Below are positions 19,748 to 64,000 of a DNA stretch of 64,000 bases, one piece after another; positions within the stretch are counted from its first letter, which is position 1, and every line of letters starts with the position of its first letter. The stretch comes from Paragordius varius (lineage: Eukaryota; Animalia; Nematomorpha), in contig OZ176052.1 of the NCBI GenBank assembly GCA_964247055.1, positions 7,440,001 through 7,504,000 on the forward strand. The letters are read 5' to 3'. The notes beneath the pieces are model-generated. The model was not told where the DNA came from and made no database searches. It saw nothing but the letters and a program-made list of their open reading frames with translations. Position numbers and translations under genes: made by a program.

Positions 19748-22700
19748 TCAATTTTCACGATGTATAAGTACAAAAAGCCCGAGTACTCCCAATAACATAT
19801 ACTAGTAAATGAATAAAATAATGCAATTAACTTTAATTTGGGGATAATCATTCATCCATATAGTAACCATACCAATGTAAGGGGCAAATCTGTAAAATAA
19901 TTAGGATAAAAAATAATTTAAGTGGTTGTTAATATAATTTAAAACATTTTATCTTATCTATATTTAAATAGTGTGACGCATAATATACATATACTAGCCG
20001 ACAAATTTTATATTCATCGAGCTAAAATCAAACAATGAACCTAAAAATTGTTATGACCACAACACAAGTTTAATGATATTCATCAAATTAAACTTAGGTA
20101 TGAAGAAAAAAATATAAAATAAACCCTTTAGCCCTCCCAATAACATCTTTATCTGTTAACCAAAGTTGACCAGGAGCGTATAATCCCCGATCATCAACTT
20201 GATTATTGTCGCCTTTTGTTAAAAATTTGATTGTGCCATTAGATCTAAAAAGGGAGAATAAAAAGTTTATAAATAAGTTTGAAACTTTTCATGAACTTTA
20301 ATGCATCGATGTACAATTGGAATCTCTCGTCCCTCAATCCGAAATACTGTTATATCGCCCACACGGATGGGTTTCCCTTTGTCATGCGTTAAAAACAATA
20401 AATCTCCGCGGTGAAATGCTGGCTCCATTGAACCACTATGTATGAAATAATTATAAAACAAAAAATAATGCTAGTTACTGTTCATAAAGCATAATATTTG
20501 TAGGGAATGTAAATAATCAGTATGGTTGCTTATTTCACACTATAGTTGGGCAATTAGCAACACAGTAGTGGTTGGAAAAAAGAAAGGAAAAATTGTTTAT
20601 TCAACATTTTGTTGCTTTTTCCATACACTACTGCAGTGGTACTCACCAAAATTATTTGACGGGTCAAATAAAATATACATTTTTTTCGAGGGCCAAAATC
20701 TTATCATGGCAAATATTCCATAGCTATTTGACACATATGCACATATGCACATATTTATACTCTAAATCAGCACAATTAATTTTTTGCGGATCGCATGTAA
20801 ATCCAACTAAAAACTCATTTTGCACCATTTAGTTTAAAAAATTAAATATTTTGATAACAACATTTATTTTGATATTAACCAATAATTTTTGACAAATTTG
20901 GTTTCGCCTCATGATAATCTTAATACGTCGTTCATATGATTATCGGTTAAGCGATTTCTGTATCCATTCTTGAAATACCTTATTTTTGAATATGCTGTCC
21001 ACGGGTAACTTGAGAAAAAACAGTTAGGATAACTTGAGCACATTTTTTTATATTTTCATATTTATTTGGCACATCTTGCCAAAACCATACATATCTTTCT
21101 TCTCTTCGATACTCCTTATATATATAGCCTCCGAATCGGAATCATTTTTAAAATCTACGAATTCTTCAATGATATGCGCCTCAAAACCGAGATGCTCAAG
21201 TTGCTTAATCTTGGATATATCCATATACCATGGATTTTCCACGAGTTTTAAGCAATTTTTAATATTTCTTAGTTTTTCAAATCTGAATTTCATTTCATTA
21301 GATAAAAATGCTAAATGATTGTCTATTTTAATTGTTGGAAAATATAGGAGTGTTTTATATAAATTCTTGTTTATATATTATTAATTTTTCTTCAAAAGCA
21401 AATATTTGATTAGCAAATTGGGTTATTACTTTGCTCCCTTGAAAACTTGTATTAAGACTAAGTCTATAAGTAAATGTCGCAAAGGTATGCAATAAAACCC
21501 ACCATTGGTCACTATTAATTTCCTTGTCAAACTTACTGTTATCTTTTATAAATAATACAATCTCATGTCTTAAAACAAAAAATCTATTTAATACTTTGCT
21601 AAGGCTTAGCCATCTCACAGCGGTGTACAAAAGAATATCATCAAACTCACTGTGGATATCTTTCAGAAGGTTTAGAATTTACGGCTATTAAATTCTCCCG
21701 GATGTGATTAACTATATCCACAACCGTTTTAATTACTGAATTGAGTGATTCATCTTTTACAAGGGAAACCAAGTTTTGCTATTGAGTAAATATTTTTCAA
21801 ATTATATTTGTTTTTCAAAAGAAGGATAAATCCTTCGTTTCATGAGGGACAGCCATCTGTGCAGATCGAAACCAATTTTTTCCATAGATATACCATTATT
21901 ATCGAAAAAAGTGCTACCACTTATTAGACATTCTTTTATTAGTTGGGAATCAGTAAACGGTTTCATGTTTTTTCCTAAAATATAACAAATTTCATACGAA
22001 GCTAATGTTACAACTTTTCCTGGGAGAAAGCTATAAAAATAATAGATTTTCTTTCTGGTACTGAATTTTTTATTTATTTGTTTCTTTCCTCATGATTTTC
22101 TGGTAATTTATGAGAATGATGGATTGAAAAATGTCTTTCAATATTGTATTTTTTATAATTATGTTGTCCTTGCATATAAGGCATGTATCAACATTTTTTA
22201 AAAACGACAAAGAATTTTTCTTCCAATTCCTTTTTAAAGAGCGATTTTTATCGGATAATTTACGATTTTTAGCATTAGATGTCATCCTTTGAATTTATAT
22301 TATGTAAATTTTTGCAAAAAATAAGAATATAATTTGAATTATGCTATAAAAAATAAATGATGTTGATTTGAAAAATATTTTATGGGAGTTATAAAAAATG
22401 ATGTAGGATCGCTATGAAAAGAATATGCATATGCAAGTTTGGGTGAAAAGCTTGCTTAAATACAAAAAAAGGAATTCAATAAAAATTTAAAAATAGAAAA
22501 AAAAATAGAATATAGAAACAGAGACAACGTGTGCCAAAATTTTGAAATCATTTTATGTAGGGAAATTTTTCTACCAAATTGGATAAAAAATAGAAATGAA
22601 ATAGATCTAAAGAAAATAAATTAATATTAAAATAAGCGAAAATTCGTTTATGTGTATTTTAAAAATTCATCAATAAAAAAAATAAATTAATTATCAATAT

Positions 22701-23999
22701 GGTCATAGGGCAATTTTAAGGCACTCTAAGGGCCGCATGCGGCCCGCGGTTTGAGTATCACTGCACTACTGTGTTGCAAATTGCCCACCTATAGTGTGAA
22801 ATAAGGACCCATTAAAATGCATACTGTATATGGATAAATCTTATATAAGATGTATAATCAGCATAAATATACTTAGTCATGAAAATAACCATTAATGATT
22901 AAAATAAAAAAATTATTGTAAACTTCTAATTTAATATAAAAAATAATAAATTTTAAATACATCTTAGACAAAACCATGTAAGCGCCATATCAAATGGTGC
23001 AACTTCTTTTCGAAACAATACTAGATATACGGCTACATTTTTAATAAACAAAACCACGGCCAAAATATAATATTATAGAATACAACTTATCATAATTAAA
23101 AATAACTCCAAAAACTTCACTAATTTTTTTGTCATAACAATTATGCACATATGATTATTAAAAATGTTTTTAACACTTCGATTCAAATTGGGGTATCTAA
23201 ATACCCCAAACTAAATTTAAATTGAATTTTTTAAAAAACTACTAAAGGAAACGGTGACAATTTAAATTTATGCTTCTATCCTGATAAATACTATATAAAT
23301 ATGCCAAAATATCTTGATAAAATTTTGTTTTGAAAAAAAAGTTCCACCTCAAACTACTTCGACGCCATTTTTATTTTACAAAAATTTTGCAAAATATCGT
23401 CTTCAATTAATTTTAAGGTTAAAACTAAAGCTTATTTTTTCTATATATTACATCTAACATTAATAGAAATAGAAGAAGCGGTTTATTATGTATTATGTTG
23501 TAATTTAACAATTTGACACATGTCACGTTGACTAAATTTTTGCCTATAAGTTTTAGCTCAAAATAAGTAATATAAAGTATTTTTAAATAAAATTTTTTAT
23601 ATATTTCGGTTTACTAATGTTATATAAGTGCAAAATTTTGCCATGGTTTCGATTGCTTCCATACTCTTTAAACTATTTGATTTTAAACAGGCCTGGGGTA
23701 TCCAACTACCCCAATTTGAATCGAAGGACTAAAATGAGTGTGTTGTATCCAAGTGTTAATTATATTTGGTATTCAAATACAATATCAATTGTACACATCT
23801 TTTACCTTAAAACTACGACTATAGGACTTTCGCTTCCTGTCAAAAACATTAAGCCCTTCCATATCATTAAAGCCGTTGAAACAATTGTACCAAAATTAAG
23901 GACTTGATATATTAGCTAAATTGATTTATTTAAACTAAAAGAAACTTGTCGTTTATTCATTCTCCGAACTTCATCAAAACAACTCAAACTCGAGAGCAT
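19748..23999 (-). CDS. SEC11: Signal peptidase complex catalytic subunit SEC11 (181 aa)
   Basis: Exons 23999-23946, 23915-23806, 20435-20286, 20244-20125, 19889-19832, 19801-19748. They give [91 protein letters not shown]. Confidence 0.97.
20518..22826. mobile_element. Palindromic CAGT-ended MITE (~170 bp) split by a hAT insertion
   Basis: 20518-20570 is an imperfect inverted repeat of 22764-22826 (CAGTATG..CTTATTTCACACTATAG(T/G)TGGGCAATT(A/T)GCAACACAGTAGTG). Confidence 0.7.
20634..22763 (-). mobile_element. Degenerate hAT (Buster/Charlie/SPIN-type) transposon, copy 1, in SEC11 intron 2
   Basis: TIR CAGTG(G/A)TACTCA; perfect 8-bp TSD CACTACTG (20626-20633 / 22764-22771); broken transposase ORFs ([16 protein letters not shown], 21355-21630; 21048-21293); lacks ~300 bp present in copy 2. 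Confidence 0.9.
23174..23755. mobile_element. TTAA-flanked non-autonomous piggyBac-like element, copy 1
   Basis: TTAA|CACTTCGAT ... ATCCAAGTG|TTAA; homologous to 40098-40606 and 40652-41404. Confidence 0.78.
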
Positions 24000-24045
24000 A
24001 ATGCGTGTGCCTTTAATGAATGTAATAAAATAAAATGGTTATCAT

Positions 24046-26955
24046 ATGGATAAGTTTACAAATTTTGAAATAGGTATAATTTTTTAAAATATCAGCAATC
24101 GTTGGCAGTGGTATCGGCGGATCTAGCTTGGCACATTTTTTGGATGTGGAACTCACTGGAGCAAATATTGATATATATGAAATGGCAACCACATTCGGGG
24201 GTCGTGTTCAAGCTATAAATATGCATGATAGATTATATGATTGTGGGGCGTCTATTATACATCCGTCGAATAAATATTTGGTAGAATTTAGAAAAAAATA
24301 TGGTTTTTCTAATTTTTTATAAAAGGTCTTAAGAAAAGAAAGTCATATTCAGGTTTCGGTCCATCAATATACAATGGCGTATCCGTTTCGAATGGATTTT
24401 TGTTCAAAACATTTCTTAGAATTGATAAATTAATTTCGTTTGTGCAAACTTTACGCTTCATCATTGCATGCGGTGTTATAGACTTTATTAAACTATATTG
24501 GGCTCTTCAAAAAATAATTAAAAAATTTACTAGGTATAGTATGTGATATTATTAATTTTCCTAATTAAAATTTTTAGATATTTTTCAGTTTTAAATTTTG
24601 TTAAGGGTAAAGTGACTATTTATTTTTTAGCCAATAACAGGTATTATTAACATCGGACCGGGCGCTGCTGGTTAGGGACTTTTAGACTAAAAATACGAGA
24701 TTATGTTATCAATTGTTTTATATTTTAAATATCCGTTACATATTTTGTAAAAATATGAAATGATTTGTTCATTTTATTTTTGACTATGTGTGATCGAGAA
24801 AAAAACGGTTTTAAAAACCAAAAAACATTAATGATATAGATTTCATCTTAAATATTATCTGTTTATATATTATTTATTCCCGATATTACGCTAAACCTAT
24901 AAACAATGTCTATTTTAAGAATATACACTCTTCAAGGTCAAGACTATGACTACAAAACCATTGAAGATTTATTGAAGCAAATTCAGTTATATGAATTAAC
25001 TCAAATCACGCTCCATTATTACGTAACAAAATGTTTGCATTTATCTCCAAAGATATATGAAATATTGATTGTTCCCGCCTTACGTGTTAATTATGGACAA
25101 GATCCAAAGAAGGTTCCAGCTTTTGTTGGTAATTAAATTCATTTTTTAACATTTTTGATAAAAAAAATAGTTTATTCTAATTAAATAATTTTTTAGCTTA
25201 ATGATTTATTTATTTTTACATCCTAAATTAGGGTTTTTTATTTTTGTTCCAATATTGGAGTATATACAAACTAATTATTTTTTACAATATTTGTAATATA
25301 AAATAATGTTTTTTAATATTTATACCAATGTTAAAATAAAACGAATTTTTATTGCCAACATCTCTAAACCGATTAAATCGCATTTAAACCTGTCTCTTTG
25401 CGTAAATTTAAATAAATGATTAATTATTTGAACCACATCGGTATATATTTTTATTCTCTGATTTTACAATTATTTGTAGGCTCGTATTTAAAAATAATTG
25501 AAAAATTCTATAAGTATAAATATTTCTTAGGCCTCATCTCATTAGCCGCTATGGGAGCGAATCTTTGGAGTTTCGAAGGTGGCAACCGCATAGTAATAGC
25601 CGCTTTGCTGAAATCATTAAACGTGAAAGTCGGGGAATATGAATCGTATTTTGAATCATCTAAATTCCGTAAACATTTGCACACAAAAAATATGGTAACT
25701 TTGCGTTTAAATGCTCAAGTGGAAAGGGTTGAATACGATGAAAGCACTAATAAATATCAGTTGACTTATGTTGAAAGCGAAAAGTATTATATGTATATCT
25801 TTTTATTAAAGGGGAAATTTTTATTACCCTGGTTTAAGACATTTTAAGCCCATGTATTTAATATCATATATTAATACTCATTTATTCAATATTAGATTAG
25901 TGAAAACCTATGATATGGTTTTCATAGCTACCCCAATGAAATTACAAAAAGTTCATATACCTTTTAAAAACAGCTGGTTTATAGATTTAAAAAGTTCCAA
26001 AGATGAGAATACACAGTATCATAAACTTTGGGTAAATTTCCTAGAAAAATGTGATTTTACTTTAAATGCCCACACTTTCGGAACCAGCAATGTCATAGGC
26101 AAAAATTATTTATATCCCTATTTATCGACCAAGAAAAATATATATTTGGATTCTATCCTAACCAGTCCGATTGGTAAAATTTATAATTCCAACGATATAT
26201 AAGATTTTTATAGTAAATTTAACTTTTATAAAAAAATGGATATCCAAATATATTTATTTTGATCACAGCACACGAAAATTTTAGGTTAATATTTTTTACA
26301 CAAAATAAACCTGACATTTGACGTTTTCACAATGGATATTTAATTTTTTAATTTTTTAAATTAATTTTCTACGGTATATCTTAACGCACATTATATAATT
26401 AAAACAGATGAATCATTCGCTGAACAATGGAATTCAGCTTCTCACATAATGCCTGTGGATTATAAAGCTAAAATTAATAAAATGACAAGAATGTGGATGC
26501 ATCTGAAAGCACGATTCTCGCCTTCCAATTTAAATTATGCACCATTATTGGATCGGACATATGATACGGAAATTACGGATCAAAAATTAGGTTGTTGGAA
26601 AATATTTTCTAATAAAGAAATTTCCGAACAAACTTTAACTCAAAAATTGTTTGAACAAAAAATGGTTGGGAACGAATGCAAATTAGCGAGGAAAGAAATT
26701 ATTTGGCATGCGTACCCTGATTATAAAACACTTTGGAATGATCCATCTACATTGCTAAATCATTCCTCATCAAATGGAGAAATAAAATATTCGTTTCCAC
26801 CCATAATTTGGCATCAAAATGCAATGGGTGGTGGAGTGTATCATTTGAATTCAATAGAATGGTTAGCTTCGACCATGGAAACTAGCTGTATATCAGCTAA
26901 AAATTGTTCCCTTTTAGCCCTCAAACATTATAAAATATGTAGTAAAATGAAATAA
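24046..26955 (+). CDS. PCYOX1: Prenylcysteine oxidase / prenylcysteine lyase
   Basis: Exons 24046-24073, 24096-24302, 24326-24533, 24920-25128, 25531-25783, 25896-26173, 26408-26955. FAD-binding IAIVGSGIGG, GGRV, GASIIHPSN, VNYGQ, LWSFEGGN, WHAYP, IEWLASTMETSCISAKN. Exon 1 is the least certain. Confidence 0.9.
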
Positions 26956-26982
26956 ACATATAATTTTTTATAAACGCATGTA

Positions 26983-27579
26983 TCATAAAATATCGTTGTG
27001 TTGGGGTTTTACCATATCAAACAATCGGGGATCCTTTAAATATTGTGGTAATTTATAGTTGAATGGGAGAAAACCTAAAATAAATATATTTATTAATAAT
27101 TGAAAAAAAAAGATTTATCGTTTCCAATATAATTTTTATTTATATAGTTTATATTGGATATCCAATCAAATAATGAAATAACAAATCTGTTCATTAAGCA
27201 TGGCCATAAAATTATTTGAATCATGATAATAAAAAACGCATCGATAATTTTTTAAAATATATTTTACATACAAAATTTTTGGGCCATTCTTATAGCTTTT
27301 GAAACTTGCGCTTGTTGATAGGCGCATAATCCTGTATATTTTTGACCATAGATTCTTCCTGTGAATGGAGACAAAAATTGGCTAATTAATCGTACATTCT
27401 GAATTTTAAAGAAAAAAAACTTTATATGACACTGTAATGTTGTTTTTGCATAAAAAGCATTCTAAGGGTTTTTGTTCATATGGATCAGGAAGGATTGTAG
27501 AAACCGAAGGTGCTTTTAAGTTTATATGGCGAAAAACGTGATTATTATTGAATTTAATAAGCATCTGTTTGCGTACCAT
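26983..27579 (-). CDS. MRPS18C: Mitochondrial ribosomal protein S18c
   Basis: Exons 27579-27421, 27398-27272, 27074-26983: [51 protein letters not shown]. Confidence 0.88.
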
Positions 27580-38764: not shown

Positions 38765-38823
38765 CTCTATATTATCATACAAGCTAAAAAAAATCATCAG
38801 ACAAAAATAATTAAAATATAATT

Positions 38824-39446: not shown

Positions 39447-39462
39447 TCGTTCATTAATAATT

Positions 39463-46623: not shown

Positions 46624-46963
46624 TTATATAAAAAAATAGGTTTATTCATAAAATTACTTGGTTGGGATCTGCTTTCCATCCAATCATATTAATTATCTGA
46701 AAGGTTGCCGGAATACTGAATTCTAATTAGAGTTTAAAGAAATACAGTAAAATTAAATAAACTCAAAAACAAGTATATTTTGCAAAGATAGCCATACTTT
46801 TTTAAATTGAAATTGTGAAATTTAAATTGGATGTGCTACAATTTACACCTCTAATCCCAATTTCGTAACCCAAAAGGATATGTTATAATAAAAATCGTGA
46901 AAAAATTGTTACATTAATATAAAATGTTTATCTTTTTACGTTTTGTCTTCATAATTTCAATTA

Positions 46964-48891
46964 TTACTGTAAATAATCACCTTTAGCCGTGTTTTCCTTT
47001 CGGGAATTTTTATTATCATAATTTTCGCCATATAAAGCGGCATAAACAGCGCTAGTTGCTAGGAGTAGGTTTTTGCCCATTTGAGCGCCTTGAATCATTG
47101 GGTCTGCAAAAGCTTTGGACTCTCCAGAACCGCGTAAATCACACATTAATTCGATTGCACTCGGATAATGAACAGTGATTTCATCCACATCAATAGTTAT
47201 AAGTTTGAATCCGGCAGTGTGTAATAGGCGACCAACATCATCAATTTTAACGAAGGGTGAAACACGTGGGTAAAATTTCTAAATACATGATGTTCTTAAA
47301 TTATATATAAGAGGTACTAATTATTGTAATTTGCCGATACTAAAAGTATAAGTTGATATATTATTGTATCATGGCTATTATTTATCCGTAAAAATTTGTT
47401 TAAAATTGGCCCAGAAGATAATGTAACATATATGGCTTTCAAATTATTGGTAAAAAACTAGATAATAAAAATGCTATTTCAAAGATAGATTTAGAGCGGG
47501 AACCAAGTTTTAAAATATATTTTTTAGCTAATTTATGATCAATGTGAGTATTTAAAATGGAAAATGTTTAATAATCGTCTGTCTTAAATATTAATTAGGG
47601 TTTTAAAAAAATTATATTGGATATTTTTAAAATGATAAATTCGAAGCAATAGAGCAGATGACTTTTATAGCAAGCTTAATAAAAAATTCTGACAAATTTA
47701 TAAAAAAGGTGCATATAGTAATAATACACTTTTAATACATAATTAAGGCTGTAAATCAAAAGGATATATGTGATGACGTCCCAATCGAAGTATATTGATT
47801 GTAAAATTAGGTAAAATTCTAAAATTAAATCTTAAGTTACAGGTAGCATCTGCAACCATATATTGAACAGCTGGATTAAAATTGTCTGTTTTTTCTTATA
47901 TGAAATATTTAAAATATATGTTTAATTTTTTTTAAGTTTTCGGATCTCAAACGATAAATGGTTTAAAAGAAAGCGGCTTTATCAAAATACAATTATAAAA
48001 ATGTTTAAATGACATTCTCGAGAATTATATCTGGTAATAATTATTTCTGATAACATGACGCTAAATTATGTTAATATTATATATTGATATTTTTTTGGGA
48101 GAGTGCAATTCTGGTTAAATAAAACATGCACTAAACGTTTTTGAAATCACTTTTTTGTTAGTGCGCGTCTATATTAGTGTAGTTTTTAAATTTAAAGTAT
48201 TTTCATAATAATATATATGACAACTAGATTATTAAACATCAGTGTTAATTCAAACTTATTTCTTTTTTAATTTTTTAGGTCAATAATTTATTTTTTACCC
48301 CTTTGCGTTCCGTTTCAGCAAATCTGAGGGCCGATCTTAATTGAAATAATGTGTCGTGCCCAAACATGGTGGCCAGAAATGCACCATCAGGTTTTAAAAC
48401 ATAATTGACGTTTTTTAACAAAGATGCAAGATCATTCATCCAATGTAGACTAGTTTATAATAAAATAAAATACCAAAGATTGCTAACAACTAGATCAAAC
48501 TTATTTTCACATAGTGAAAAATTTTCTTCGGTAGCTTTTATTTTTTGGGCATTTGTAGATGAAATCTTTCTAAAATACATATATTAATGTACTAGATCAA
48601 AGGGTAATATATTAATTGTATAATTTAAGGAGTCCTAAATATATTCAATTATAATACCTTATTCAATAAACTAATATCAGGTAGACCTAATTCCAAAATT
48701 AAGTCTTGTTTTCGAATAATATCATTTATACGATCATGCAAGCGTAAAGCAACCTAAATTTAACAGATTTTTACTTCATTTCTAATATATTTATAATCAT
48801 CAAGGTTGCTAAGGAAAGATGAGCGATATTGTTGAGTACTTTTTATTTTTCTATCGAAGATAGAAGAGGTCTTTTTTATAACTTTCCACAT
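46964..48891 (-). CDS. NDUFAF5: Mitochondrial complex I assembly factor NDUFAF5
   Basis: Exons 48891-48775, 48753-48658, 48634-48593, 48565-48474, 48449-48299, 47278-46964: IFDRK..RNE|VALRLHDRINDI..FDLVVSNLC|LHWMNDL..LKPDGAFLATMFGHDTLFQLRSAL..VSPF..DVDEITVHYPS..DLRGSGES. Start and middle exons are less certain. Confidence 0.88.
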
Positions 48892-49524
48892 TTAACATGT
48901 TTTTTACACGCTTGTCAACCGACCGAAAAAGGTGCATGGCGTCGATCAGTGGTATATAATTACTTTACATATAAATAGTCATTAATATTATCATTATAAA
49001 TATTACTAACATTGACTAACATTTTTAACCACAAAATTTGGGATGACCCATAGTAATTGACATTTAAATACGTTATAATTTGGATTTATTCCACCAGAGA
49101 GCGATTGCATATGCTAAATATATTTGGCACAATTTAAAAAAATACTGTTTCAAGCATATTTATACAAAAAAATAAAAAATGTAAGATTGTAAAATCCTCA
49201 TGTGAATGCCGCCACTTAGAAATTTTGGTTGAACTGCTAAAAAATGGGAATTAAAAATATATTCAATTGAACAATATGTTTTTAAAAGTCATTTTAATTA
49301 CGTATAGCGAGAAAATATTAGATATTTATTAATCTTAAAATCGAATGTTTGTATTGGATATGAACCATAAAGGCTACTTATTCTTAAAACGATAAAATAT
49401 TTAAAAAATAGCTAAATAACAATTTATTATTTTATACTCATAATTAGTTTTACTTGGGAATATTTGGGTGTTTTAAGTTATAAGGGTTACTAATAACTTA
49501 CTGACAAATCTTTATTAAGATCAT

Positions 49525-49902
49525 TTTTCATATGAGGTATTAAGTCCGGACCGAGTAGATCAATATATGGCAGATATCATAAAAGATGTCAATACTGCCT
49601 TCCAGTTACCTCCAACAGTTACACGCTTATTTTTACATCATTTTAAATAGGATAAAGAAAAGTTATTGGAAAGGTATTATGACGGTAATTCAGATAAACT
49701 GTTCTTAGAGGCGCATATATCAATCCAAATCAGCTTAAAAATAAATATGCAATTGAAACCCAATATTCCAATCAACCCTATGAGCCGCAAAGTGCATTTT
49801 GTGAGATTTGTTTATTATCAATGCCAAAAAAGCAAATGACAGGATTGGACTGTGGTCATACGTTTTGCATTTCGTGTTGGTGAGAATACCTATATACTAA
49901 AG
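49525..49902 (+). pseudogene. ARIH1: Ariadne-1 (RBR E3 ligase) pseudogene fragment
   Basis: Intronless YEVLSP..HHFK*DKEKLLERYYDGN..CEIC..GLDCGHTFCISCW*EYLYTK. TAG at 49648 replaces the conserved Trp, there is a frameshift near 49717 and a TGA at 49881, and no further ARIH domains are nearby. Confidence 0.85.
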
Positions 49903-51751: not shown

Positions 51752-53508
51752 ATGATATATCATGGTAAACAATTATTCTCTACTAGTATTCGGTATCAAC
51801 AGCCATTTTTGTGGATTAATTATTTGAGTCATTTCATAATGTTCACTTGTCTATTCAATACAATTTTTACCACTGTTAATATTGATGGGGTAAAATCATT
51901 AAAAAACGGTGATTCGAACACCAAACAACTTAACACTGAACTCAAAGTATTGAAATCTCCTACATCAGAAAAATATACGGGACCAACGAAAGATAGAAAA
52001 TTTACCCCTGTTACCACGTATTACATTAAAGGTACAACAATGTCAACTGAAAAACATCAACAAATTTTACCCACAACACCCATTTTATCTACACGCAAAT
52101 CTGACACTAATTATTTCAAAAATGTAACTTCACATTCGCAAAAAATGGATTATCCCATAAGCGTTGCCACAGCAGCGTCCGAAGATATGAGCTCCGATGA
52201 ACAATTTGCATTTAGACCCATAGCTCTACATATTCCGCCCTCATTTATACGCCTTTCGGCCCCGCTAAAGTATTTCCGTATTGTGGTAGGTTATGGTTCA
52301 AAATATTACACGGCAAACATGGCCAATGCGAAGAGAGGTGGAGGTGATAAAAATTTTAATCCACCAATCATCAATATAGGACTCCTTTTACCCCAAAATT
52401 GTAAATATCAATCGTGTTTGTCAAAAATTGCGCCGGCCATGCGAATAGCCTTCCGTCGATCTAAGGTAGAATCCCTGCTGACTGGTTACACAATAATTAT
52501 AATACAGGGTGATAGTAATTGCAGTAATGTTGAGGGACCAATCGTTGCTATGCGTATGTGTTGGTTCGAAAAAGTTTCCATAATCTTTGGGCCAGTTTGT
52601 GATTTTGTCGTAGAAACTATCTCAATACTCACTAGTCGATTTTTTAATATTCCTCTCATTACGGCTGGCGCTTTACGTCCCGAATTTGGTAAGGATAAAC
52701 GCTTGGCTGATTCCGCATACCCGTTATTGACTAGGGTAGGTGCTTCGCTAAATTCAATCTACCCATTCTTCCACAAATTTTTTAGGTATTTTATACTGTT
52801 ACGACAATTTTTAATAATATTTGAATACCAATGTTTTATTAAATATGATAACGTTTTAACTTTTAAAGGTGTTGTTTAGGCAAATGTTACCACCGTCTTT
52901 TATGTGTTTTGACTTCTAAAATGACTTAAAACGGGTTACCAATAAGTTAATTCTGTTAAGCATTAAATTAATTCCTCCACTATTTTTATTATCCTTACAT
53001 TAAATTTTAAGTGAAAATATAACAACTATCATAAATCCATAGTTAAATTGATAAAATTTAAATTTTTTAATATATTAAGTTTCGATATTAAAATCAACCC
53101 AATTCTAGATTATCATGTGGATCCATCATATTTTTTATTTTATCTCATATCTCAAAAAACGGTTCAATTACTTTTTTAGACAAAACAAATGGAAAAAGTT
53201 TTATCTTCTTTATGAAGTTGATAGTCACCCCCAAGTAGTATCTCACTTTTGTTTCCATGTCGCTGTAAGCATGAAGAAAGCATCGAATGATTCCAATTAC
53301 AAATACTTTACCGAATATCAAAAATATAGCAATGCTTCATATGCTTCGTATCAACAAGGATTTTCAAACACTCAGCCCGTGAACGCATCACTAAATTCGA
53401 CAAGTAACTCATATTTTATGGATCTCAATAGCGGTGATATTGATCAGATGAAAAAACAAAACAAAACCTATTCCGACATCCTAAGGAACATTGGGAAAGA
53501 CAATTCAA
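51752..53508 (+). CDS. Receptor guanylyl cyclase variable cassette V1 (signal region, Thr/Ser-rich stalk, N-half of the ANF-receptor ligand-binding domain)
   Basis: Exons 51752-52785 and 53180-53508. Motifs INIGLLLP, GDSNCS, IFGPVCD, NIPLITAGA, YPLLTRVG, WKKFYLLYE..SHPQV..FC. Ends NIGKDNS-A|GTTTGT (phase 1). Confidence 0.8.
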
Positions 53509-54021
53509 GTTTGTCAATTTATTTTAAATTCATTTATAATTGCAGTATTTACATTTGTAATGAGTTCATACATAAATTAAATTTTAGAAGTTTTTATACC
53601 TATTTTTTTGAAAATAAATTAAAGCGCAGGGGAATATGCATAAAAGTATGTACTAATATTAGATGATAATCACAATGCCCATAGGGCATACCTTTTGTTT
53701 ATATATTTTATGTATATTTTTTATTTTGTAAAATAATAATAATAATAAAATTACTGGCGAAAACCAAATTACAAATGGGAAAATATTACCTGACCCCTTT
53801 TCATTTGTTGTAATTGAAAAAAAAAGTATAAATACAATAAATTTTGTTTTATTTTTTTTTAAACCTTTTTTTAAACTTTTTTATTTTTATTAAACATGCA
53901 TGCAAAATTTTTTTACTTTCACATAATGTAATTCACATTATCTATCACCATTTCTTACCTTTTTTTTTAATTTAATTTACTTTTAAACATTACATGATAT
54001 GAAATTTATTTTTGCATTTAA

Positions 54022-55786
54022 ATGTTCATTTTTTTAATAAACATTTCATTGGCATACGTTATCCCACTTCTATGTGAGGGGAAGGCTAATTTTAGTAATG
54101 TGCCTTCACCAACAAACAGACATTCTTTTTTACACCTTTCCAATTCTGGGGAAACTAATCAAAGCATAATCAAATTTTATAAACATATGATAATCCCTTA
54201 TGACGAAGAACATTATAGGTATGAACATCTCCCATGGTGGAACGATGCCATTATGTCGTCCCACAATAATTCGATTAAATCATCGTGGGAATTGTTGGAA
54301 GAAGCTTTAAATTCAGGACAGACCTCAAACTATTTCTCAAAGATTCATAGACGAAGCAAAGCCCGGCTGGTCCCAACATATCCTATGGCAAATTTGTCCA
54401 TATTTTCACGAGGCAAAGAACAAAGAATGACAACAACTAGCAACAATTTAATGAACGATGTCAACAATATTACCGCAATAAAGAATAGCAGCGAAACATC
54501 AAATGAGGCAAAACAATCGTTAATAAACGGTAGTAAATTTGTTACCATGGTCTCTGATACAATTAATCAGGATTATGAATCATTTGTTATTAATGAGCCA
54601 TTGAATGTAGCAGATCATGAAATGGAGTTTGATTTAGATGACATGGCAATAGGGGATGGGGGACATGCTTTAATGCCACAACCCACGAGTACTAGTCTTG
54701 CAGTTTTTTCTACCACGCCTCCTATAAATACCCTAACCTTTCATTTAAATGATACACTTGAGAGGTCAAAAATATCGCTAAATATTACTAGCCAGCCTTT
54801 AAGTTTTGACAAGCTTGTTTTAAACTCCACAGTTAATACAACTCGAATTATCCCCAATTCCAGTCTACCTATATTATCGAAAACCAATGTGCGGACAGTC
54901 CCATCGAAATCAATTAACACACCGATTTGGGATAAGGTATCAGATAAAGTAAATTTGTTGGAATCGAATCCCACGTACCCACAAACGATAAATTGGGGTC
55001 TTCTCCTAAACAATGACAGTAAAAGTCTTTCATCGCTTTCACGTATAGCTCCAGCCATTCAAGTTGCCCTGAAAAGGCAACAGGTAAAATCTTTACTAAC
55101 GATGCCAATGAGAATCGCCAATGTTTCTGAATTAAATTACTCTCTTAACTTGGCGAGCACAGGAATTGTGCAACGAATCCCTGAAACATTTAAGATAGTA
55201 GTCAAAGAAGGCGATTCCAAATGTTCCCACATATATGGTTTAACTGAGGCCATACGATTAGTTCTTAACGAAAATGCCAGTGTCCTCTTTGGACCAGTGT
55301 GTGATTTAGCTGCCGCAAAATTTGCTCGGCTGACCGGTCGCTTATTTAACATACCAATGATCAGTGCAGGTACGTTAACTCACGATTTTGGAAAACCTAA
55401 AACGTTGCCAGATTCGGAGTTTCCTTTGTTAACACGCGTGGGACCATCCTTTAATTCCATGTCACGGGCCCTGATCGACATTATTTTACATTTGGATTGG
55501 CATAAAATTGTTATCTTGCATGACCCAAACAGTCACCCCGAAGTCATGGATAAATTTTGTCATTATGGGGCCGCTGGTGTCCTAAACGAGATGCTTAAAC
55601 GAAATGCAGCTTTAACTAACAGTACTAATAACTTTACTGGTCTATACGATCGGGATGGCGAGGAAGAAATTATTATGAGGAATAAAAAATTCCGTTATCA
55701 ATCCCCTAAGGATTTGTCAGGCCCTCTATCTGGTCGGATGAGTTGGCGTGATTTTATGCTAGAAAATATTGGGAATGAGTATTCAA
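54022..55786 (+). CDS. Receptor guanylyl cyclase variable cassette V2
   Basis: Single exon. Signal peptide MFIFLINISLAYVIPLLCEG, ~320-aa Ser/Thr/Asn-rich extension, then INWGLLL, GDSKCS, LFGPVCD, NIPMISAG, FPLLTRVG, WHKIVILHD..SHPEV..FC. Ends ENIGNEYS-A|GTAACA (phase 1). Confidence 0.82.
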
Positions 55787-56500
55787 GTAACAGAAAATAT
55801 ATATAATATATGTAATTGAGTTAATTTAACATTTTATTCTGTTTTTTTTATACTTAGAAAGGGGGATATTTACAATTTGTTTGCACAGGTTTAACAATAT
55901 GTAAAAACTAAACAAACGGAGTTTTAGGTAAACACGGTAGATATATACATAAAAAATATTTAATCTTAGATCAATTCCTTTAATATTCCATTCACATTAT
56001 GTATGATTAATGGTATAGTTTTTCATTCAATTTTTTTGCGCGATATACATAATAGTATATAAACATACATTCTTTATTTACCATTTATTTGTTTTATATT
56101 CGTTTGCAGGTATGCATGCATTTATTTTTACTTTAATTTAGATGCGATTGTAATTGCATCTATCTTTTCATCAATATATTTGTTTATTAATGTTATAACA
56201 TTAACTATATAGTTTTACCCAATGAAAAAAAAATCGTTCGTTATTTGATCGTTACTTGCATATATTTTTTGTTATTGAAAATGTATGTATATGATATGTT
56301 TATAAATAAGTTATCAACGCTTTTTAGTTTAAAGTGTTTGTTTTACCATTTGCACATAGCGCTTGAAAAATGACTTTTTTGCAAACAAAGAAGTTGCATT
56401 TAAATAAATTTCAAAATAATTTTTTCTATTGGGCAACAGCTTGTACAAAAGACATTTATATGTCCCATATAATTCTGTATGACAGTTCTCCAAAATATTG

Positions 56501-57440
56501 ATGATTTTTATTCGAATTCATGGTAAATATTTATTATACTGGATGTTCTTGCCCATTTTACTCTCATACAACAATTATTCTGCCCAGAAACAGAGTATTG
56601 AAAAAGCAGTAAATAATATAACATTAAGCAAAAAGTTGTATGATTTGCAGACATCATTAAGCAACACAAATATATCCGTACCATTCCGGATTCCCAATAA
56701 TAAAAATCTCACACAAATTACACCGATTTATATAGCTGTGATTGCTCCTGATGATACAATATCGTCCACATCATTAAATGTATCCAAGCACATTAACGAC
56801 ACAACTGATCTCAGTCCTCATAGGGAATACCTATTCAGTCGTAAATGGATTCTACCAGCCATAGCATTAGCCTTATCCAAAACCCAATCCCAATATAAAT
56901 TGGCTCAACTACCCTATAAATTTGTACTGCGGTTCAGAGATGGGAAATGTTCAGCAACATATGGCCCTTTAGCCGCCATCGAGTTTTATCGAGAGAAGCG
57001 GGCCGATGTTTTTTTCGGTCCTGTTTGCAGTTATGCCGCTGCAGTCGTTGGTCGGTTTTCCCCTTTCTGGAATATTCCGCTAATAACTCCAGGTGCTATG
57101 GTAGATCACATGGCTGATAAAAAAGAGTATCGTCTGCTAACACGTATGAATGGAAGTTACCGAAATTTGGCTGATTTTTTTGTGGCTCTCCTAAAATACT
57201 TTGATTGGTCAACCATAGCTATGTTGTACAATGATAATTTGGATAGGAAACATCTGGGCAAGTCAGATTGTAGTTTTGAAGCGGAAGCAATTTACATACG
57301 CTTTATGGAAACATTCTCTGACAAATTTACCAATGGATCTAGTCGTCCCACCTTTGAAGCTTTTGAAGAAAGGCCCATAAATTTTCACATAATTCGAAAA
57401 TTCGATCAATGGCTCAAGGATGTATCCAAAAAAACGAGAA
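56501..57440 (+). CDS. Receptor guanylyl cyclase variable cassette V3
   Basis: Single exon. Hydrophobic leader LLYWMFLPILLSY, then IYIAVIAP, RDGKCS, FFGPVCSYAAAVVGRFSPFWNIPLITPGA, LLTRMNGSY, YFDW. Ends VSKKTR-A|GTTGAG (phase 1). Confidence 0.88.
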
Positions 57441-57872
57441 GTTGAGCTATTTGATTTGCATATATATTACATTTTAAATAATTCTTGTTTGATATGATTG
57501 GTTCTAAATATATAATCATCCCTATGTTTGTTGTATGATATTTTTTATCGTTTGGTTAACTAAACATCTATATGGCTATACAAATAAAATATTATCATAT
57601 GATTATAGAAATTAAGTTTGAGCATAAGGTTCATGAAATTTTTAGAGCTAAGATGTTTTCATATCCCAGAAAACGTTAATTTGAACATCTTTTATATTTA
57701 ATACAATAATAGGCCACTATATTTTTACGATTACTTTTTAAATTTTATAATCTACTGTATTTGCGACAATTATTTGTGAAAATTTTTTCGTCACACTGGT
57801 ATCCACAATTGTTTATTTAGCATTTTTGTGATTTGAATATTTTTTCAGTACCATTATGTGTTTATTGTAGAC

Positions 57873-58088
57873 CAGGGGTGTCCAACACAAATGACTCGCA
57901 TTCTAATCATACATGAGCATTAATAAATATTTTATAATTCTCAAACATCAACTGTTAAAAGCAAACACAATATAACAATTTATCTTAGTTCGTTGTCAAT
58001 TGGATAAACTTATTCTAAAATAAGAGTTGCATATTTTTGGAAATTACGAATTCCCAAATTTTTCGCCGGCCGCGTGTGGCCACCTCTG
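57873..58088. mobile_element. hAT-type MITE remnant (CAGGGGTGTCC family)
   Basis: Left end CAGGGGTGTCCAACACAAATG as at 15904; degenerate right end GGCCACCTCTG. Confidence 0.6.
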
Positions 58089-58681
58089 ATGTAGCAAATA
58101 AAAACTCTTATTAGAGTCGGTATTTTGAGTTTGATCGAATTTCCCTTCTTTATGAAAACCGTTTCGTAAAGAAGTTTTATTGCGTCAAAAAATTGTCTAT
58201 ACCGGTACTGATTCCATTGCCTGGTCAAATTTCTGATATCGGTCTTTAATTTCTGATGGCCTAATATACAATGTGAATAAATACCCATAAATTTAATCAG
58301 AAAAATCTTAGTATTGTATTTTTCCCCAAAGTATGTAAAAAACAATAGTAAAAACTAAGGTTAACATTGTATTGAAAATTTTTTTTGGAATTGCGGTTCA
58401 GGTTTTAAACTCTCATTTTTACATTTTTGAAAATATATGATTTCATATTGGTTATCCATAGCTTTGTTTATAATCTTGAAACTATTTTAAATCCATTGCT
58501 TTTTATGTACCAATTATTTAATTTAAATTCTTTGTTAGTATCAGTTATCGCGACACTGGTTAAATCGCAATATTTATGATGTTTTATTACTCACAAAATA
58601 TAATTATATAAGAATATTATAATTTTACTTATGAATAAATTAATGATGTTAGCATTCTATGAATTCTCATTAATTTTTTAG

Positions 58682-61600
58682 TTATCATTCTGTGCGCATC
58701 TCAAAGCAGCGTGCGAAAAATATTGCTCACAGCCTATGATCTCAACATGATCCAAAGTGGTGAATATGTCTTCTTTAACATCGAATTATTCAACAAGTAA
58801 AAATAATTTGTAATTTTTTGATTATAATAAATTTTACTAGCAAACGATTTCGCCTAATTTTAGGTATAGATAACATTTGTTATCAATAGCCATATCAAAA
58901 ATTATTTTAGGTTTTATTTGACGTTAAACCAGTCGATTCAAACATTTGTCGCATAATATTTATCCAACTATTTTTTCCCTTACCTTATAAAATATTAGGG
59001 TCGCTATTTACTATATTATCTCAAAATATGTTTTAGCCATCTCTAATGTTCGCCTTAATATGTAATTTTTAAAAATTCACGTTCTGAGCAATCCATTTTC
59101 CTTGTGTTTAAATGTCGTCACACTTGCTAATTTCCATATTCGAAAAAAATATTGTGCGGACAAACCGGATGTATATGTATATACCCCTTATTTTTCTTCA
59201 TGTTTGTCACCCTAAATGTTAGATTTCTTCCAATCAAAATAGCCCTTATTATAATTAATGAGTTTGAATAACTTAATATTACTTAAAAATAATTAAAATG
59301 TCCTCATTTATCAAACACCAATTTTTTCTAAATGCCAATTTAAATATATAACGATTTTTACATTTACATTTATACGAGAAGGTTATAACCATTTTCATTT
59401 TCAATATTTTTTAATTTTGATAAATATTTAGAAAAATAGCAAAATATTGATAAAAAAATCAGCCTCATTGTCCAATTTTTATCTATAGTTTTTGGATAGA
59501 AATTTTGTTAAAAATACTTTTTATGACATGAGCTAAATTAAGGCGTTTGCATCTGACCATATTATTAATTATAGAACTAATATCATTGTTAAAAATTTCA
59601 TTGGGTATAAAATTACCATAAATACTTACCTTAAATAATTTTTGGAATTTCCACGGTTTTTTTAGCGGCGGTGATTATGGAATTATTATTTGTAAAAATA
59701 ATATTAATTTTGCCCTATATGTTTAGTTATAAAAAACCATAAAATTTTCGCCAAATGGATCCAAATTTTCTAAAAGAATCTAGTTTTGAATTCATTTTTC
59801 AATAAAGTTAGGAAAGGATCCTTTAAAACAGGGGTTGCCAACACGCGGCCCTCCAAAATATTTTTGCAGTCCGCGAGAAATTTTAAATACAAAAGTTTAC
59901 GAAATCCAAGTATAATTATTTTTTTAAACAAATTTTCTTTATAAAAATTTCGAAATTTGGCAATGAACAGCAAAAATGTTCAAATAAATATTAGTTTTTA
60001 CAATCTTTTTCAAAATGTCATAAAATTTTTGTAAATGCCCATCTATTTTGCGAACGCGGCCCATCGGATTTTTCGATCCAAAAATACGGCCCGCGAAGCC
60101 ATTTATGTTAGACACCCCTGCTTTAAAATATTTATATAGGCTACTTGTCCATATAACATTTGTTGCCATTAATAACACTAGACAAAACATTTTAATTTTT
60201 TTAACTGCCATTCTTGTAAATTTAAAATTTATTTCATTAAAGTACATTATTAGTATATCTGAAAAGAAAATTGGTCTAGCATGCAGAATTTTTTTATATT
60301 AGAGTTTATCGATAATTTTTGGCCCCGATTTAACATTAAACTCGAAATTTCGAAAATTAAAAGTTTTAGATATTCGAAAGAGCGCAAACTGCATCTTTTA
60401 AAATTTAAATGGTAAGTCATTTAAATCAATCGGATGTAAAAGTTATTTGGATTTAAATGGTCGAAATTTTCAATCCAATAAGTCAAGAATTTTCACAGAC
60501 AAACTAATTTGAAAATCATATAAATTATTTTAATATAATAATTAGGGTTATATAAGTTTTTAATTTAAAAAAAATATTTGAAAAAGCTTTTGGTTTGCTT
60601 TTTTAATAAAAATTATTATTATCATAAATATTTTACCTAGTGGATACTAAAATGCATAGCTATAACTGTAAATTTATTACATAATGGCTATAAAAGATCA
60701 AAAATACCTTAAACTTTGTTTTTATATTTAAAATTTCGAAAATATCAGCCTCGTAAGAAAATAAATTAATATTGATGAGATGGTAATTTTTAAAAAACAA
60801 AAAACTTAAAAATGGCTGTTTAGAGTGACATAAAAGCAATAAAAAATGTTTTAATCAAAAAAACTTTCTTGTGTTATTTTTTTTGGACATTCATCACCAT
60901 CTAAACAAAGTTTGAGCTATTTTCATCCATTTGTTTGAAAGACATAATTAAAAAAAATGCTCTCGCTTCGCGCGTTTGTCGCTCTTTGTGTCCAATATTA
61001 ACTGTCGATGTAATACATATTAGTATGTATTTTATAGAGTTTTTATTACTCTTTCGAATAATATATTACAAATGGGCATTACATGTATATTTTCAAAGAA
61101 AAACATTTTTTAGTAAAATTTTGATAAAGAGGGCGCATAATCAAAAAAATCAAATTATACAAAATTCTTCCATCGAGTTATAATTTTTATTTCAGATTTA
61201 CTGTTAAAATGATACTAAACATCAGAAAATGCAAAAAACTCGAGTGGCAGAAAAATTTGTTGTCCAGTGTAACATAAGACCGTATATTCGTTTTAATATT
61301 TTCAATGATAATTCATCGGACTAAAGCTATTTTTTAACGTAAATTTTAGACGAATACCATTCTTTAAATCTGATAAGTATAATGCCACTAAATAATTTAG
61401 GCCTGATGGTAAAAATCCAATTTGGCAAAGTGACAAGGATACAGCCGAACAAAATGCTAAAGCCAAATTAGCTTATGAAGCTTTATTCACGCTTACTATG
61501 CGTATGCCTGACAATGAAGAATACAAAAAATTTTCGGACCAAGTTAAAGAAATCTCAAAGCGCGTTTACGGTTTTGATTATGGAACCGAAAATGTTAGTA

Positions 61601-64000
61601 GATCTTTATTGAATTTTATGTCATGTATAATAATGGCAAATTAACTTAAATTATGATTTAAAATGTTATTTTGGTAAAGCGTGCAATATTTGTAATATCA
61701 ACAAGGTTGAATATTTTTTAAAGATATCTTTCTATACTAATACTCTAAAAATGATGATGATATTAAGGTTGTTATAGATATAAAAATTCAGATGTTAATA
61801 TATAAATAGAATTAATTTATCTTTACGGATATAGGTGAATGCATTTGTAAGCGCTTTCCACGACGCCGTCATTCTCTATGCTTTGGCACTGAATGAAACC
61901 TTGCAAGCAGGTTTTAACTATACCGATGGTGTAGAAATTACAAGAAGAATGTGGAACCGCACTTTTACAGGTAATAATGCCAAACATGATTTATTTAGCA
62001 ACAGACATATAAGTTGCTTCATTGCACAGTCATCTTTTAAACTTTATTAGTCAATCAATTTATTAGTAAGTTATTTATTCTACTGTGTAAGTGCATTCAT
62101 TATAAAATATGAATTTTTATAATTGGTATTTATATGTTTTTGAATTTAAATTTAGGGATTACGGGGAATGTTAGTATAGATGCTAATGGTGATAGGTATA
62201 CGGATTACTCCTTGTGGGACCTAAATCCGGTTACGGGGCGTTTTCAAGTATATTTTATTGTAAATTTAAAATTATAACAAAACCTAAATGTAAAAAAATG
62301 TAAGAAAATAATGCAACCTTATGTTAATGCTTAAAGACCGTAATTAATTTTCGAAACGGTTAAAACCAATCAAGATAAAAAATTTTGCCATATGCATTAG
62401 TATATGTACCATAAATATTTATATGTTCCATATTAGGTAGTGTTAAATTATTATGGGAAAGATAATTCTTTGGTTGAAGTGCCCAACAAAACTATTCATT
62501 GGGCCGGAGGTCGGACTTCCGCTCCTTTAGATCAACCCGTTTGTGGATTCGATGGTAGCTTATGCAAGAAAAAGGGTAATCCATATTATATTTTTTATTA
62601 TCCTTTTTTTTGAAAAAGTTTAAACGAATCTATTTTTCGTTTTAAAACAGAATTTCCCAAATACGCCATTATTATCACATTTTTGGGATCACTCGTTTTC
62701 ATTCTCATGATCCTATCATTATTCATATATCGCCGGTACCGGATAGAATCGGAATTGGGTAATATGAAATGGCGCATAGATTGGGATGATTTGATGTTCC
62801 AAAATTTCTTGCAGCCCAAGGATAACAAAAAGTTTGGGAGTAATTGGAGTCTCAATCGATTAGGGTTGGATGATACTAAAAGTAAAAAGTCACGTTTACG
62901 TGGTAATATTCCTCACAAAAAACGATCTCATCGTTTGCACGGGTATCTGAAAGGAACACCTTCAAATCATTTATATTCCCCGAGTGGTCCATTAACCCAT
63001 CATCTCTCTTTCGCATCAACTAAATGTTTGAGTCCTGTTCAAGGAGTTAACACCGAAGATGAAATGGAAAATAACCGTTTAGGTCTTGTCGGCGCAGTCG
63101 TCAAAAAGGGTAGGGAGGAGCGACTTAAAAAACGTTCGCTGGAATATTCTTCGGATACGGCTCTGAGTGAAAGTATGTTTAATGATGACAGTGGTGATAG
63201 CAATAGCTCATCAACACAAATGAAAGTTCACAAAAACAGTGATTCACACGAACAACAGGATCCACTTCTCTCTTTTTACCGAAGGCGTTATTCTCAACCC
63301 CCTAACCATCATCAACAACAAGGACAAAATCATCATTTTAGTTTAACTAATGCTTTGCATCGCGGATCTAATTTTTTCCACTTACACGATAGTTCAGCCC
63401 ATGCAACAGTTAATTCAACATTCAATGATGTTGAACCCAAAAAGAAAAAATCCAGCATGAGGAATCGACTTTTGTCAAGTATGACATCATTTATTTTTTT
63501 AAAATCATTATTTAACTTAAAAAAATCTTTATGAATGTTGTTAGTGTTAATATTTATAATTTTTTTGAAGTTTAAGATTTGTTTATGTCCAACAAAAAAC
63601 TACATAAAAGCAAGTTTCGCTGTGTTTTATATATAATACTTTTTGATTAACTGCACTTCGAGCCAAATCAACTACTGTAGACCTATTATGTCAAAGATGT
63701 ATTATATAATAATCGATATTTTACACAATAAATATATGGTATTAGAAATTGATCCACAATATTACAATCGGTACAGTAAGATATCTAAATTATCAAAAAT
63801 AACGAGCGAAGAATTGGAAAAATTGCATAGGCATCATCATCAAAGCCACAAGAAGAGTTCAGATTCAACCTGGTATGCAGGTTTGACCTCGTTTTAGTTT
63901 TTAACCCATAGATTTAGCAAGGAATTGGGAATGGATTACATCCGTTCGTATTGCATACTACAAAAGTGTCCCTGTTATCTTAAAACCGGTTGTTATGAAA
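58682..64000 (+). CDS. Receptor guanylyl cyclase (natriuretic-peptide-receptor type) constant region, continuing past the window
   Basis: Exons 58682-58796 ([18 protein letters not shown]), 61401-61593, 61835-61970 ([19 protein letters not shown]), 62156-62247 ([14 protein letters not shown]), 62437-62575 (P.CGFDGS.C), 62651-63478 (TM, WRIDW), 63746-63880, 63912->64000 (IAYYK, start of the kinase-homology domain). The cyclase domain itself is not in the window. Confidence 0.9.
59829..60120. mobile_element. hAT-type MITE (CAGGGG family)
   Basis: CAGGGGTTGCCAAC / GACACCCCTG with perfect 8-bp TSD CTTTAAAA. Confidence 0.85.
60176..61269 (-). mobile_element. Non-autonomous CACTA/EnSpm-like element, copy 2 (rGC intron)
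   Basis: TAA|CACTAGAC ... GTCCAGTG|TAA; inverted homolog of 45516-46623. Confidence 0.78.

Follow-up and report, generated by a model that had tools for sequence, protein, structure and literature searches.

Probable 21-31 nt micro-introns, mostly near gene starts, in a repeat-rich nematomorph genome that also carries kilobase-scale introns

According to Hadjez et al. (2026; PMC13644364), introns shorter than 30 nt occur among 51 genomes only in myxobolids and Dicyema, such introns arose in animals at least twice, further cases are predicted, and myxobolids retain U2 and U2AF. In Stentor, the lariat loop measures 10-11 nt and is followed by a 5-nt tail (PMC9505925). The first-pass annotation of the DNA examined here (a 64-kb stretch, hereafter the window) had called introns of this size typical of ciliates, nucleomorphs and dicyemids, which stands for dicyemids, and they had also already been published for myxobolid myxozoans. 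Blind spliced alignment and conserved intron positions support the presence in the window of real GT-AG micro-introns beside kilobase-scale introns in an animal, as that annotation had proposed. Our favored reading, drawn from genomic sequence and given a probability of roughly 0.85, is that the segments are GT-AG introns of ancestral origin which, in a horsehair worm (Nematomorpha), became as short as 21-31 nt and which the major (U2) spliceosome splices out. Among the sequencing runs on record, none catalogued as RNA contains the stretch.

All 12 segments originally listed begin with GT and end with AG on the gene strand and have the lengths claimed for them. Eleven sit in six housekeeping genes (SEC11, PCYOX1, MRPS18C, NAA40, SDE2 and NDUFAF5) whose models are complete or near-complete. 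An ORF check yielded a truncated protein when any one of these 11 was retained, and each of the five segments whose length is a multiple of three carries an in-frame stop; the claim that removal restores conserved proteins held for 11 of the 12, while the segment at 63881-63911 is not required by homology. Support from frame restoration is direct for SEC11, NDUFAF5 and NAA40 and comes from one flank for PCYOX1, MRPS18C and SDE2. The interior of the segments has a GC content of 12%, compared to 29% for the exons on either side (Wilcoxon p=0.0005). The probability of finding GT and AG by chance at two fixed positions is 0.0017, compared to 0.006 when only the donor is fixed and any in-frame acceptor at a distance of 20-31 nt is allowed, and 0.105 per site with a donor anywhere within ±9 nt. 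Comparison with the introns of other eukaryotes (55-4,023 nt there), which covered the SEC11 and NDUFAF5 segments, gave exact positional matches for five segments (two in SEC11, three in NDUFAF5) and a near match for one. Database searches of the spliced models were run one exon at a time; joined models were built locally and compared with sequences already retrieved, and positions 22478-22517, within the repeat of SEC11 intron 2, were excluded when aligning locally, running self-BLAST and fitting the codon model. The two genes with the fullest support contain the following features:

19748-23999, minus strand: SEC11 gene, encoding 181 aa, with five introns that all occupy ancestral positions
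23916-23945, minus strand: SEC11 intron 1, 30 nt, in phase 0 following codon 18, found by blind alignment with 6 independent proteins
20436-23805, minus strand: SEC11 intron 2, 3,370 nt, mostly repeats, including a decayed DNA-transposon-like copy
20245-20285, minus strand: SEC11 intron 3, 41 nt, a distal short intron
19802-19831, minus strand: SEC11 intron 5, the last one, 30 nt, in phase 0 following codon 164, in a distal position 4.2 kb away from the ATG, found by blind alignment
46658-48891, minus strand: NDUFAF5 gene, 3' end left out of the model
48754-48774, minus strand: NDUFAF5 intron 1, 21 nt, phase 0, found by blind alignment
48635-48657, minus strand: NDUFAF5 intron 2, 23 nt, phase 0, found by blind alignment, in the column of 752- and 1,192-nt introns
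48566-48592, minus strand: NDUFAF5 intron 3, 27 nt, phase 0, found by blind alignment, in-frame stop if retained, the weakest of the four
48450-48473, minus strand: NDUFAF5 intron 4, 24 nt, phase 2, found by blind alignment, in the column of 197-, 1,464- and 2,054-nt introns of three animals

Given unrelated proteins, a blind spliced aligner recovered the six SEC11 and NDUFAF5 micro-introns to the base. Forcing the minimum intron to at least 32 nt cost SEC11 52-71 score points and dropped the NDUFAF5 N-terminus; with a floor of 32 or 40 nt, NDUFAF5 lost its first ~115 residues and SEC11 deteriorated at both ends, so that the warning that standard annotation would mis-call these genes is borne out in this simple form. 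The 5' end of NDUFAF5 was only partly recovered with two homologues and not at all with one. When annotation imposes a minimum of 32-40 nt, gene starts are truncated, and this may, by extension, inflate the gene loss reported for hairworm genomes. The position of SEC11 intron 1 is common to 24 other loci (55-250 nt there) and that of intron 5 to 14 (55-703 nt there); retention of the latter is the mildest case, giving 173 instead of 181 aa, and the homologous tail is that of the spliced version. NDUFAF5 intron 1 is identical in column and phase to a 4,023-nt stingray intron and a 999-nt woodlouse intron, while intron 3 lies five alignment columns from a 652-nt phase-0 stingray intron in a gappy, poorly conserved stretch.

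In the remaining four genes, exons were matched one by one to solved human or ancestral proteins, and the features are:

24046-26955, plus strand: PCYOX1 gene, last junction tentative
24074-24095, plus strand: PCYOX1 intron 1, 22 nt, phase 1, leaving a 13-aa ORF if retained
24303-24325, plus strand: PCYOX1 intron 2, 23 nt, phase 1, leaving 84 aa if retained
26983-27579, minus strand: MRPS18C gene, encoding 125 aa, with a tentative start codon
27399-27420, minus strand: MRPS18C intron, 22 nt, phase 0, leaving 57 aa if retained
38824-39446, minus strand: NAA40 gene, 199 aa
39065-39087, minus strand: NAA40 intron, 23 nt, phase 2
39541-39563, plus strand: SDE2 intron 1, 23 nt, phase 0
39791-41945, plus strand: SDE2 intron 2, 2,155 nt, repeat-filled

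NAA40 exon 1 matches the human protein up to residue 136 and exon 2 from residue 138 onward, with the split codon between them. Exon 2 of PCYOX1 matches that protein and begins where the FAD-binding domain begins; the intron 2 junction is based on frame continuity because exon 3 has no Pfam match. The MRPS18C exon downstream of the intron starts at human residue 76, and the upstream CxxC exon, which has no PDB match, was recognized by eye only. SDE2 exon 2 matches human SDE2 from residue 42, beginning with the second residue of the exon, and an in-frame stop right before it means that an upstream exon is required; exon 1 has no Pfam match. SL trans-splicing that would bypass the first intron was rejected as an explanation, given that the first Met of PCYOX1 exon 2 comes after the FAD motif and that NDUFAF5 has four consecutive micro-introns.

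The further claim that the same genes hold 1-3 kb introns filled with transposable elements fits SEC11 and SDE2, whose second introns are repeat-rich (2,593 of 3,370 nt and 1,194 of 2,155 nt, respectively, are repeated in the window), but fails for NDUFAF5, PCYOX1, MRPS18C and NAA40. The 1,020-nt intron of NDUFAF5 has no repeat within the window, and the models of the other three contain no intron of 1 kb or more. The last of the 12 listed segments and one further candidate are:

63881-63911, plus strand: candidate intron, 31 nt, deep in a receptor guanylyl-cyclase-like gene
14016-14041, minus strand: candidate micro-intron (the thirteenth, absent from the original list), 26 nt, intron 1 of an FkbM/Star-like methyltransferase gene

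The former is plausible, though unproven by homology. Its flanking exons have no match in PDB or Pfam. The 135-nt exon that precedes it is symmetric and skippable from a donor at 63479, although the codon usage of this exon looks coding.

Introns shorter than 30 nt form a minority class in the window (10 of 26 modeled), and none of the 10 is farther than 418 nt from the start codon, a confinement that the first-pass annotation had missed. They make up 10 of 15 proximal but 0 of 11 distal introns (Fisher p=0.0007), a value that is optimistic because the 450-nt cut-off was picked after the data had been seen and the introns come from only seven genes. In all seven modeled genes of the window the first intron measures 21-30 nt, and micro-introns tend to be adjacent (NDUFAF5 has a run of four, PCYOX1 a pair). 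The shortest distal introns in the window measure 30, 31 and 41 nt, a very small sample, and the two kilobase-long introns of the proximal zone are the repeat-filled ones. Splice signals are minimal: the 5' site is reduced to GTW, the interior is AT-rich and there is no real polypyrimidine tract. A +5 G occurs in 2 of 13 micro-introns versus 2 of 14 long introns, so that the 5' sites of the two classes are similarly weak. An A stands 7 nt from the 3' end in 8 of 13, with no fixed motif or branch-point register, and TA at -9 occurs in 2 of 13 and is thus not fixed there. None of the 13 introns starts with the U12-type 5' site RTATCCTT, and no snRNA was found in the 64-kb window.

The organism was placed with one exon at the edge of the window:

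1-4004, plus strand: neogenin/DCC exon

Its match to Gordionus scored 798 bits versus 323 for the next match and is collinear over 1,166 residues at 41% identity, compared to at most 32% and shorter blocks in other animals. In a quick tree of this one gene, with 10 rows and no myxozoan or dicyemid among them, it is sister to Gordionus (SH-aLRT 100) on a long common stem. Because the closest named relative, on the evidence of one gene, is the nematomorph Gordionus, it is very probable that this is a third animal lineage with introns shorter than 30 nt, besides myxobolids and dicyemids; a literature search turned up no paper describing short introns in Nematomorpha. At the neogenin locus of Gordionus, 26 introns are annotated, the shortest of them 65 nt, but this says little about the 5' ends of housekeeping genes. 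Exon searches for Gordionus NAA40 and PCYOX1 orthologues came back blank, which the length window makes uninformative, and the NDUFAF5 search gave no match standing out as a close relative.

Under the favored reading, ancestral U2 introns near promoters would shrink to 21-31 nt and would be recognized across the intron (intron definition). A branch A some 6-10 nt from the 3' end would make the lariat loop about 12-17 nt long, and Stentor shows that such a geometry can work. At about even odds, the cap- or promoter-proximal zone might lower the length floor through the cap-binding complex, slow early polymerase or the first nucleosomes; such a zone would permit tiny introns without demanding them, as kilobase-long introns occur there as well. 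The most far-reaching form of the proposal remains tentative: that a nematomorph represents a third animal lineage, independent of the other two and the first among ecdysozoans, to splice introns of 21-27 nt, and that the length floor of its spliceosome depends on position. Introns below 30 nt would then be spliced only if they lie no more than a few hundred bases from the cap or promoter, and kilobase-long, transposon-filled introns elsewhere would be processed by the same spliceosome.

There are several potential alternative explanations for these observations. Some segments may be retained, or bypassed by exon skipping through a single 92-nt intron over the 42-nt NDUFAF5 exon 3 or through one of 433 nt over the guanylyl-cyclase exon of 135 nt; neither skip disturbs the frame, and the whole-sequence HMM score of NDUFAF5 is equal with the skip (299.7) and with the full model (299.0). 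However, this concerns at most 3 of the 12 segments, skipping lowers the NDUFAF5 best-domain score from 295 to 260, the blind aligner prefers the micro-introns and SEC11, NAA40, PCYOX1, MRPS18C and SDE2 offer no such route, making this explanation improbable. It is hardly credible that the segments are cut from the DNA, as in the somatic excision of ciliate IESs, or that assembly errors shortened longer introns, even though only 36-58% of sampled words are present in the best DNA runs. The GT-AG ends lie at ancestral intron positions and are not TA-bounded like IESs, and a 1,331-codon ORF is intact in the same AT-rich window. Additionally, consensus errors change the length of homopolymers by 1-2 nt, and do not produce 20-nt shifts at 12 sites. 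An origin of the DNA in a myxobolid or dicyemid, for which the phenomenon would already have been published, is suggested by the 29% GC and the 22-23 nt introns, which resemble those of myxobolids, and both groups are absent from the tree; yet the neogenin collinearity, identity and common stem with Gordionus make such an origin scarcely likely.

The explanation that bears on position, and on that step only, accepts the introns as real and attributes their 5' bias to deletion bias or to selection for compactness of promoter-proximal DNA in tightly packed head-to-head gene pairs, so that a 22-nt intron could be spliced anywhere. With start codons 47 nt apart in SEC11/PCYOX1 and ~17 nt apart in NAA40/SDE2, the 5' regions are indeed packed extremely tightly; some distal introns are as short as 30-31 nt, and long introns are tolerated proximally. 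On the other hand, the shortest distal introns stay above the 21-27 nt class, albeit in a tiny sample, and flukes show the same 5' clustering, which its authors tied to intron definition (PMC6530080). This explanation is a serious possibility, though short of an even chance. As tiny and kilobase-long introns are found together in single genes, with the tiny class linked to the 5' end, the genome provides an internal control for what determines minimum intron length, a steric limit on U1 and U2 or cap- or chromatin-assisted intron definition.

If the favored reading is correct, this would be the third animal case of introns shorter than 30 nt, in a repeat-rich ecdysozoan. Stentor, whose introns measure 15-16 nt, has similarly AU-rich introns with minimal signals and a workable branch A near the 3' end, but all of its introns are tiny with a fixed branch position, compared to the varied lengths, lack of a fixed register and kilobase-long introns seen here (PMC9505925). 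Liver flukes and other flatworms likewise combine short and kilobase classes in one repeat-rich genome, with adjacent, 5'-enriched microintrons that have no polypyrimidine tract (Ershov et al. 2019, PMC6530080); however, their lengths peak at ~37 nt rather than 21-27 nt, and their microintron splice sites are nearer the consensus, whereas here micro- and long introns are alike in the weakness of the 5' site (PMC6530080). Dicyema is close in size class (median 27 nt) and conservative exon-intron structure, but it belongs to an unrelated lineage in which about two thirds of introns are shorter than 30 nt and, in the available part of the article, no 5' restriction is reported (Zverkov et al. 2019, PMC6543705). 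The myxobolids are parasites, as is the worm studied here, and have introns of the GT-AG type that are 21-27 nt long and conserved in position, a 5' site of only GTa, a 3' site with little beyond AG, short introns that cluster together and longer introns as well; the length below 30 nt and the reduced motifs that define their class are found in the window too. They differ in that the host genome here is ecdysozoan and that introns shorter than 30 nt are a minority in the window, confined to the 5' end, instead of representing the genome median.

All 12 segments that the first-pass annotation had read as spliceosomal micro-introns of 21-31 nt have GT..AG ends and the proposed lengths on the gene strand; 11 are solid or likely introns, while one (63881-63911) is unproven. 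A further candidate in a FkbM/Star-like gene is new.

Micro-introns and candidates in the window
14016-14041, 26 nt, candidate between a short first exon and the FkbM domain, FkbM/Star-like gene
19802-19831 and 23916-23945, SEC11
24074-24095 and 24303-24325, PCYOX1
27399-27420, MRPS18C
39065-39087, NAA40
39541-39563, SDE2
48754-48774, 48635-48657, 48566-48592 and 48450-48473, NDUFAF5 introns 1-4
63881-63911, 31-nt candidate, receptor guanylyl-cyclase-like gene

Models were made for SEC11, PCYOX1, MRPS18C, NAA40, SDE2 (5' part), NDUFAF5 (most of the gene) and the FkbM/Star-like gene, and in these genes retention of any micro-intron truncates the reading frame, with an in-frame stop inside all five micro-introns of a length divisible by three. 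Micro-intron interiors average 12% GC compared to 29% in flanking exons (window, 29%). Independent evidence comes from a self-written protein-to-genome spliced aligner permitting any GT-AG intron, which placed all six SEC11 and NDUFAF5 micro-introns where they had first been proposed. Both 30-nt SEC11 introns were recovered exactly with six of six proteins, taken from intronless metagenome contigs, and forcing a minimum intron of 32 or 40 nt cost 52-71 or 71-94 score points, respectively. The four NDUFAF5 micro-introns were base-exact with five of six proteins and the family profile; two additional proteins found one or none of them, and a single 92-nt intron could stand for 48566-48592 plus its upstream neighbour. 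The expectation that standard annotation would mis-call such genes was borne out at a basic level, as a 32-nt minimum removes the first ~115 residues of NDUFAF5. Around this gene's start, 48892-48919 (-) is a further candidate 28-nt GT-AG intron through which the gene would gain a short exon upstream. An Ariadne (ARIH)-like fragment interrupted by two stops and one frameshift, probably a pseudogene piece, lies head to head with NDUFAF5 (49520-49900, +).

Database searches used single exons, with joined models compared locally to fetched sequences. In NAA40, the match of exon 1 stops at human residue 136 and that of exon 2 begins at 138. Searches with NAA40, PCYOX1 and NDUFAF5 sequences yielded no Gordionus orthologue of a micro-intron gene. 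Only one flank has database support in SDE2 (alignment starts at the second residue of exon 2, human residue 42), MRPS18C (post-intron exon begins at residue 76) and PCYOX1 (exon 2 starts with the FAD motif); the PCYOX1 and SDE2 junctions presumably coincide with human exon boundaries. Five micro-intron positions are also shared exactly with longer introns of other eukaryotes. All five SEC11 introns occupy the five commonest positions among 80 fetched, partly redundant loci (24, 37, 41, 15 and 14 loci), where introns at the two micro-intron positions measure 55-250 and 55-703 nt. In NDUFAF5, introns 1, 2 and 4 coincide in alignment column and in phase with introns of stingray and woodlouse (197-4,023 nt), the position of intron 4 recurring in a third animal. 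Intron 3 lies where the alignment is gappy, five columns away from a phase-0 intron of stingray. Because a fixed donor has an in-frame acceptor 20-31 nt away at only 0.006 of positions, the five exact matches are far above chance. Spliced alignment and conserved positions thus support, at the sequence level, micro-introns alongside kilobase-scale introns in an animal; among sequencing runs registered as RNA, none was found to contain the stretch.

For 63881-63911, the preceding 135-nt exon is symmetric and has coding-like codon usage; no homology support was found for it, and a 433-nt intron from donor 63479 would skip it. Upstream, three long ORFs (51752-58797, +), likely alternative first-exon cassettes, each close with the first part of an ANF-receptor domain and precede one common guanylyl-cyclase-like body.

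Ig/Fn3 receptor and ANF-receptor domains give the window animal-type content. The neogenin/DCC exon (1-4004) best matches Gordionus sp. m RMFG-2023 (798 bits at 41% identity, query coverage 88%; runner-up, 323 bits), and the two are sisters in a quick single-gene tree containing no myxozoan or dicyemid (SH-aLRT 100, stem 1.26). On this one gene, the host is a nematomorph other than Gordionus. In neogenin/DCC (+), one exon of at least 4 kb spans a region that 12 introns divide in Gordionus, a wholesale intron loss in one gene of a genome that retains tiny ancestral introns at other loci. The sole Rfam match in the window is a tRNA gene (10313-10384, -).

Among 26 modelled introns in seven genes, those below 30 nt comprise 10 of the 15 lying no more than 450 nt from the ATG but none of the 11 farther away (Fisher p=0.0007, with the cut-off set after the data were seen). 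The first intron is 21-30 nt in every gene. In the distal set the smallest lengths are 30 and 41 nt, with 31 nt added if the guanylyl-cyclase case is counted. Both kilobase-long proximal introns consist mostly of repeats with other copies in the window; they are intron 2 of SEC11 and of SDE2, the only ones of that length in the 5' zone, and share a repeat family (23170-23760, 40174-41409). Two decayed transposase-like copies, 75-80% alike, hAT-like by eye and without a Pfam match, lie within SEC11 intron 2 (20633-22400) and directly downstream of NAA40 (36685-38765).

Micro- and long introns alike carry minimal splice signals (5' GT then A/T, +5 G rare; T/A-rich 3' ends). Across 13 micro-introns, eight have A at -7 and no fixed TA register was seen. 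Most likely, the major spliceosome would match both splice sites across the intron, with a putative branch A ~6-10 nt before AG. Stentor splices 15-16 nt introns (loop 10-11 nt, tail 5 nt) with conserved U2/U6 (PMC9505925), and U2 and U2AF are retained in myxobolids (PMC13644364). Confinement to 5' ends may reflect cap- or chromatin-assisted assembly by the promoter or, at about even odds, merely greater compaction at very tight head-to-head promoters. Modelled start codons are 47 nt apart in SEC11/PCYOX1 (23999, -; 24046, +) and about 17 nt apart in NAA40/SDE2 (39446, -; 39463, +); each 5' UTR would therefore extend over the start of its partner's coding region. PCYOX1 and MRPS18C lie tail to tail, with stop codons (26955/26983) about 30 nt apart.

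Our literature search found no publication describing short nematomorph introns. Animal introns below 30 nt are published for myxobolids and dicyemids only (PMC13644364; PMC6543705), the size class seen here. Flukes have 5'-clustered microintrons alongside kilobase introns (PMC6530080), resembling this genome in placement but differing in size (~37 nt). As far as sequence indicates, this is the size of myxobolid and dicyemid introns combined with the placement of fluke microintrons, in a third lineage.
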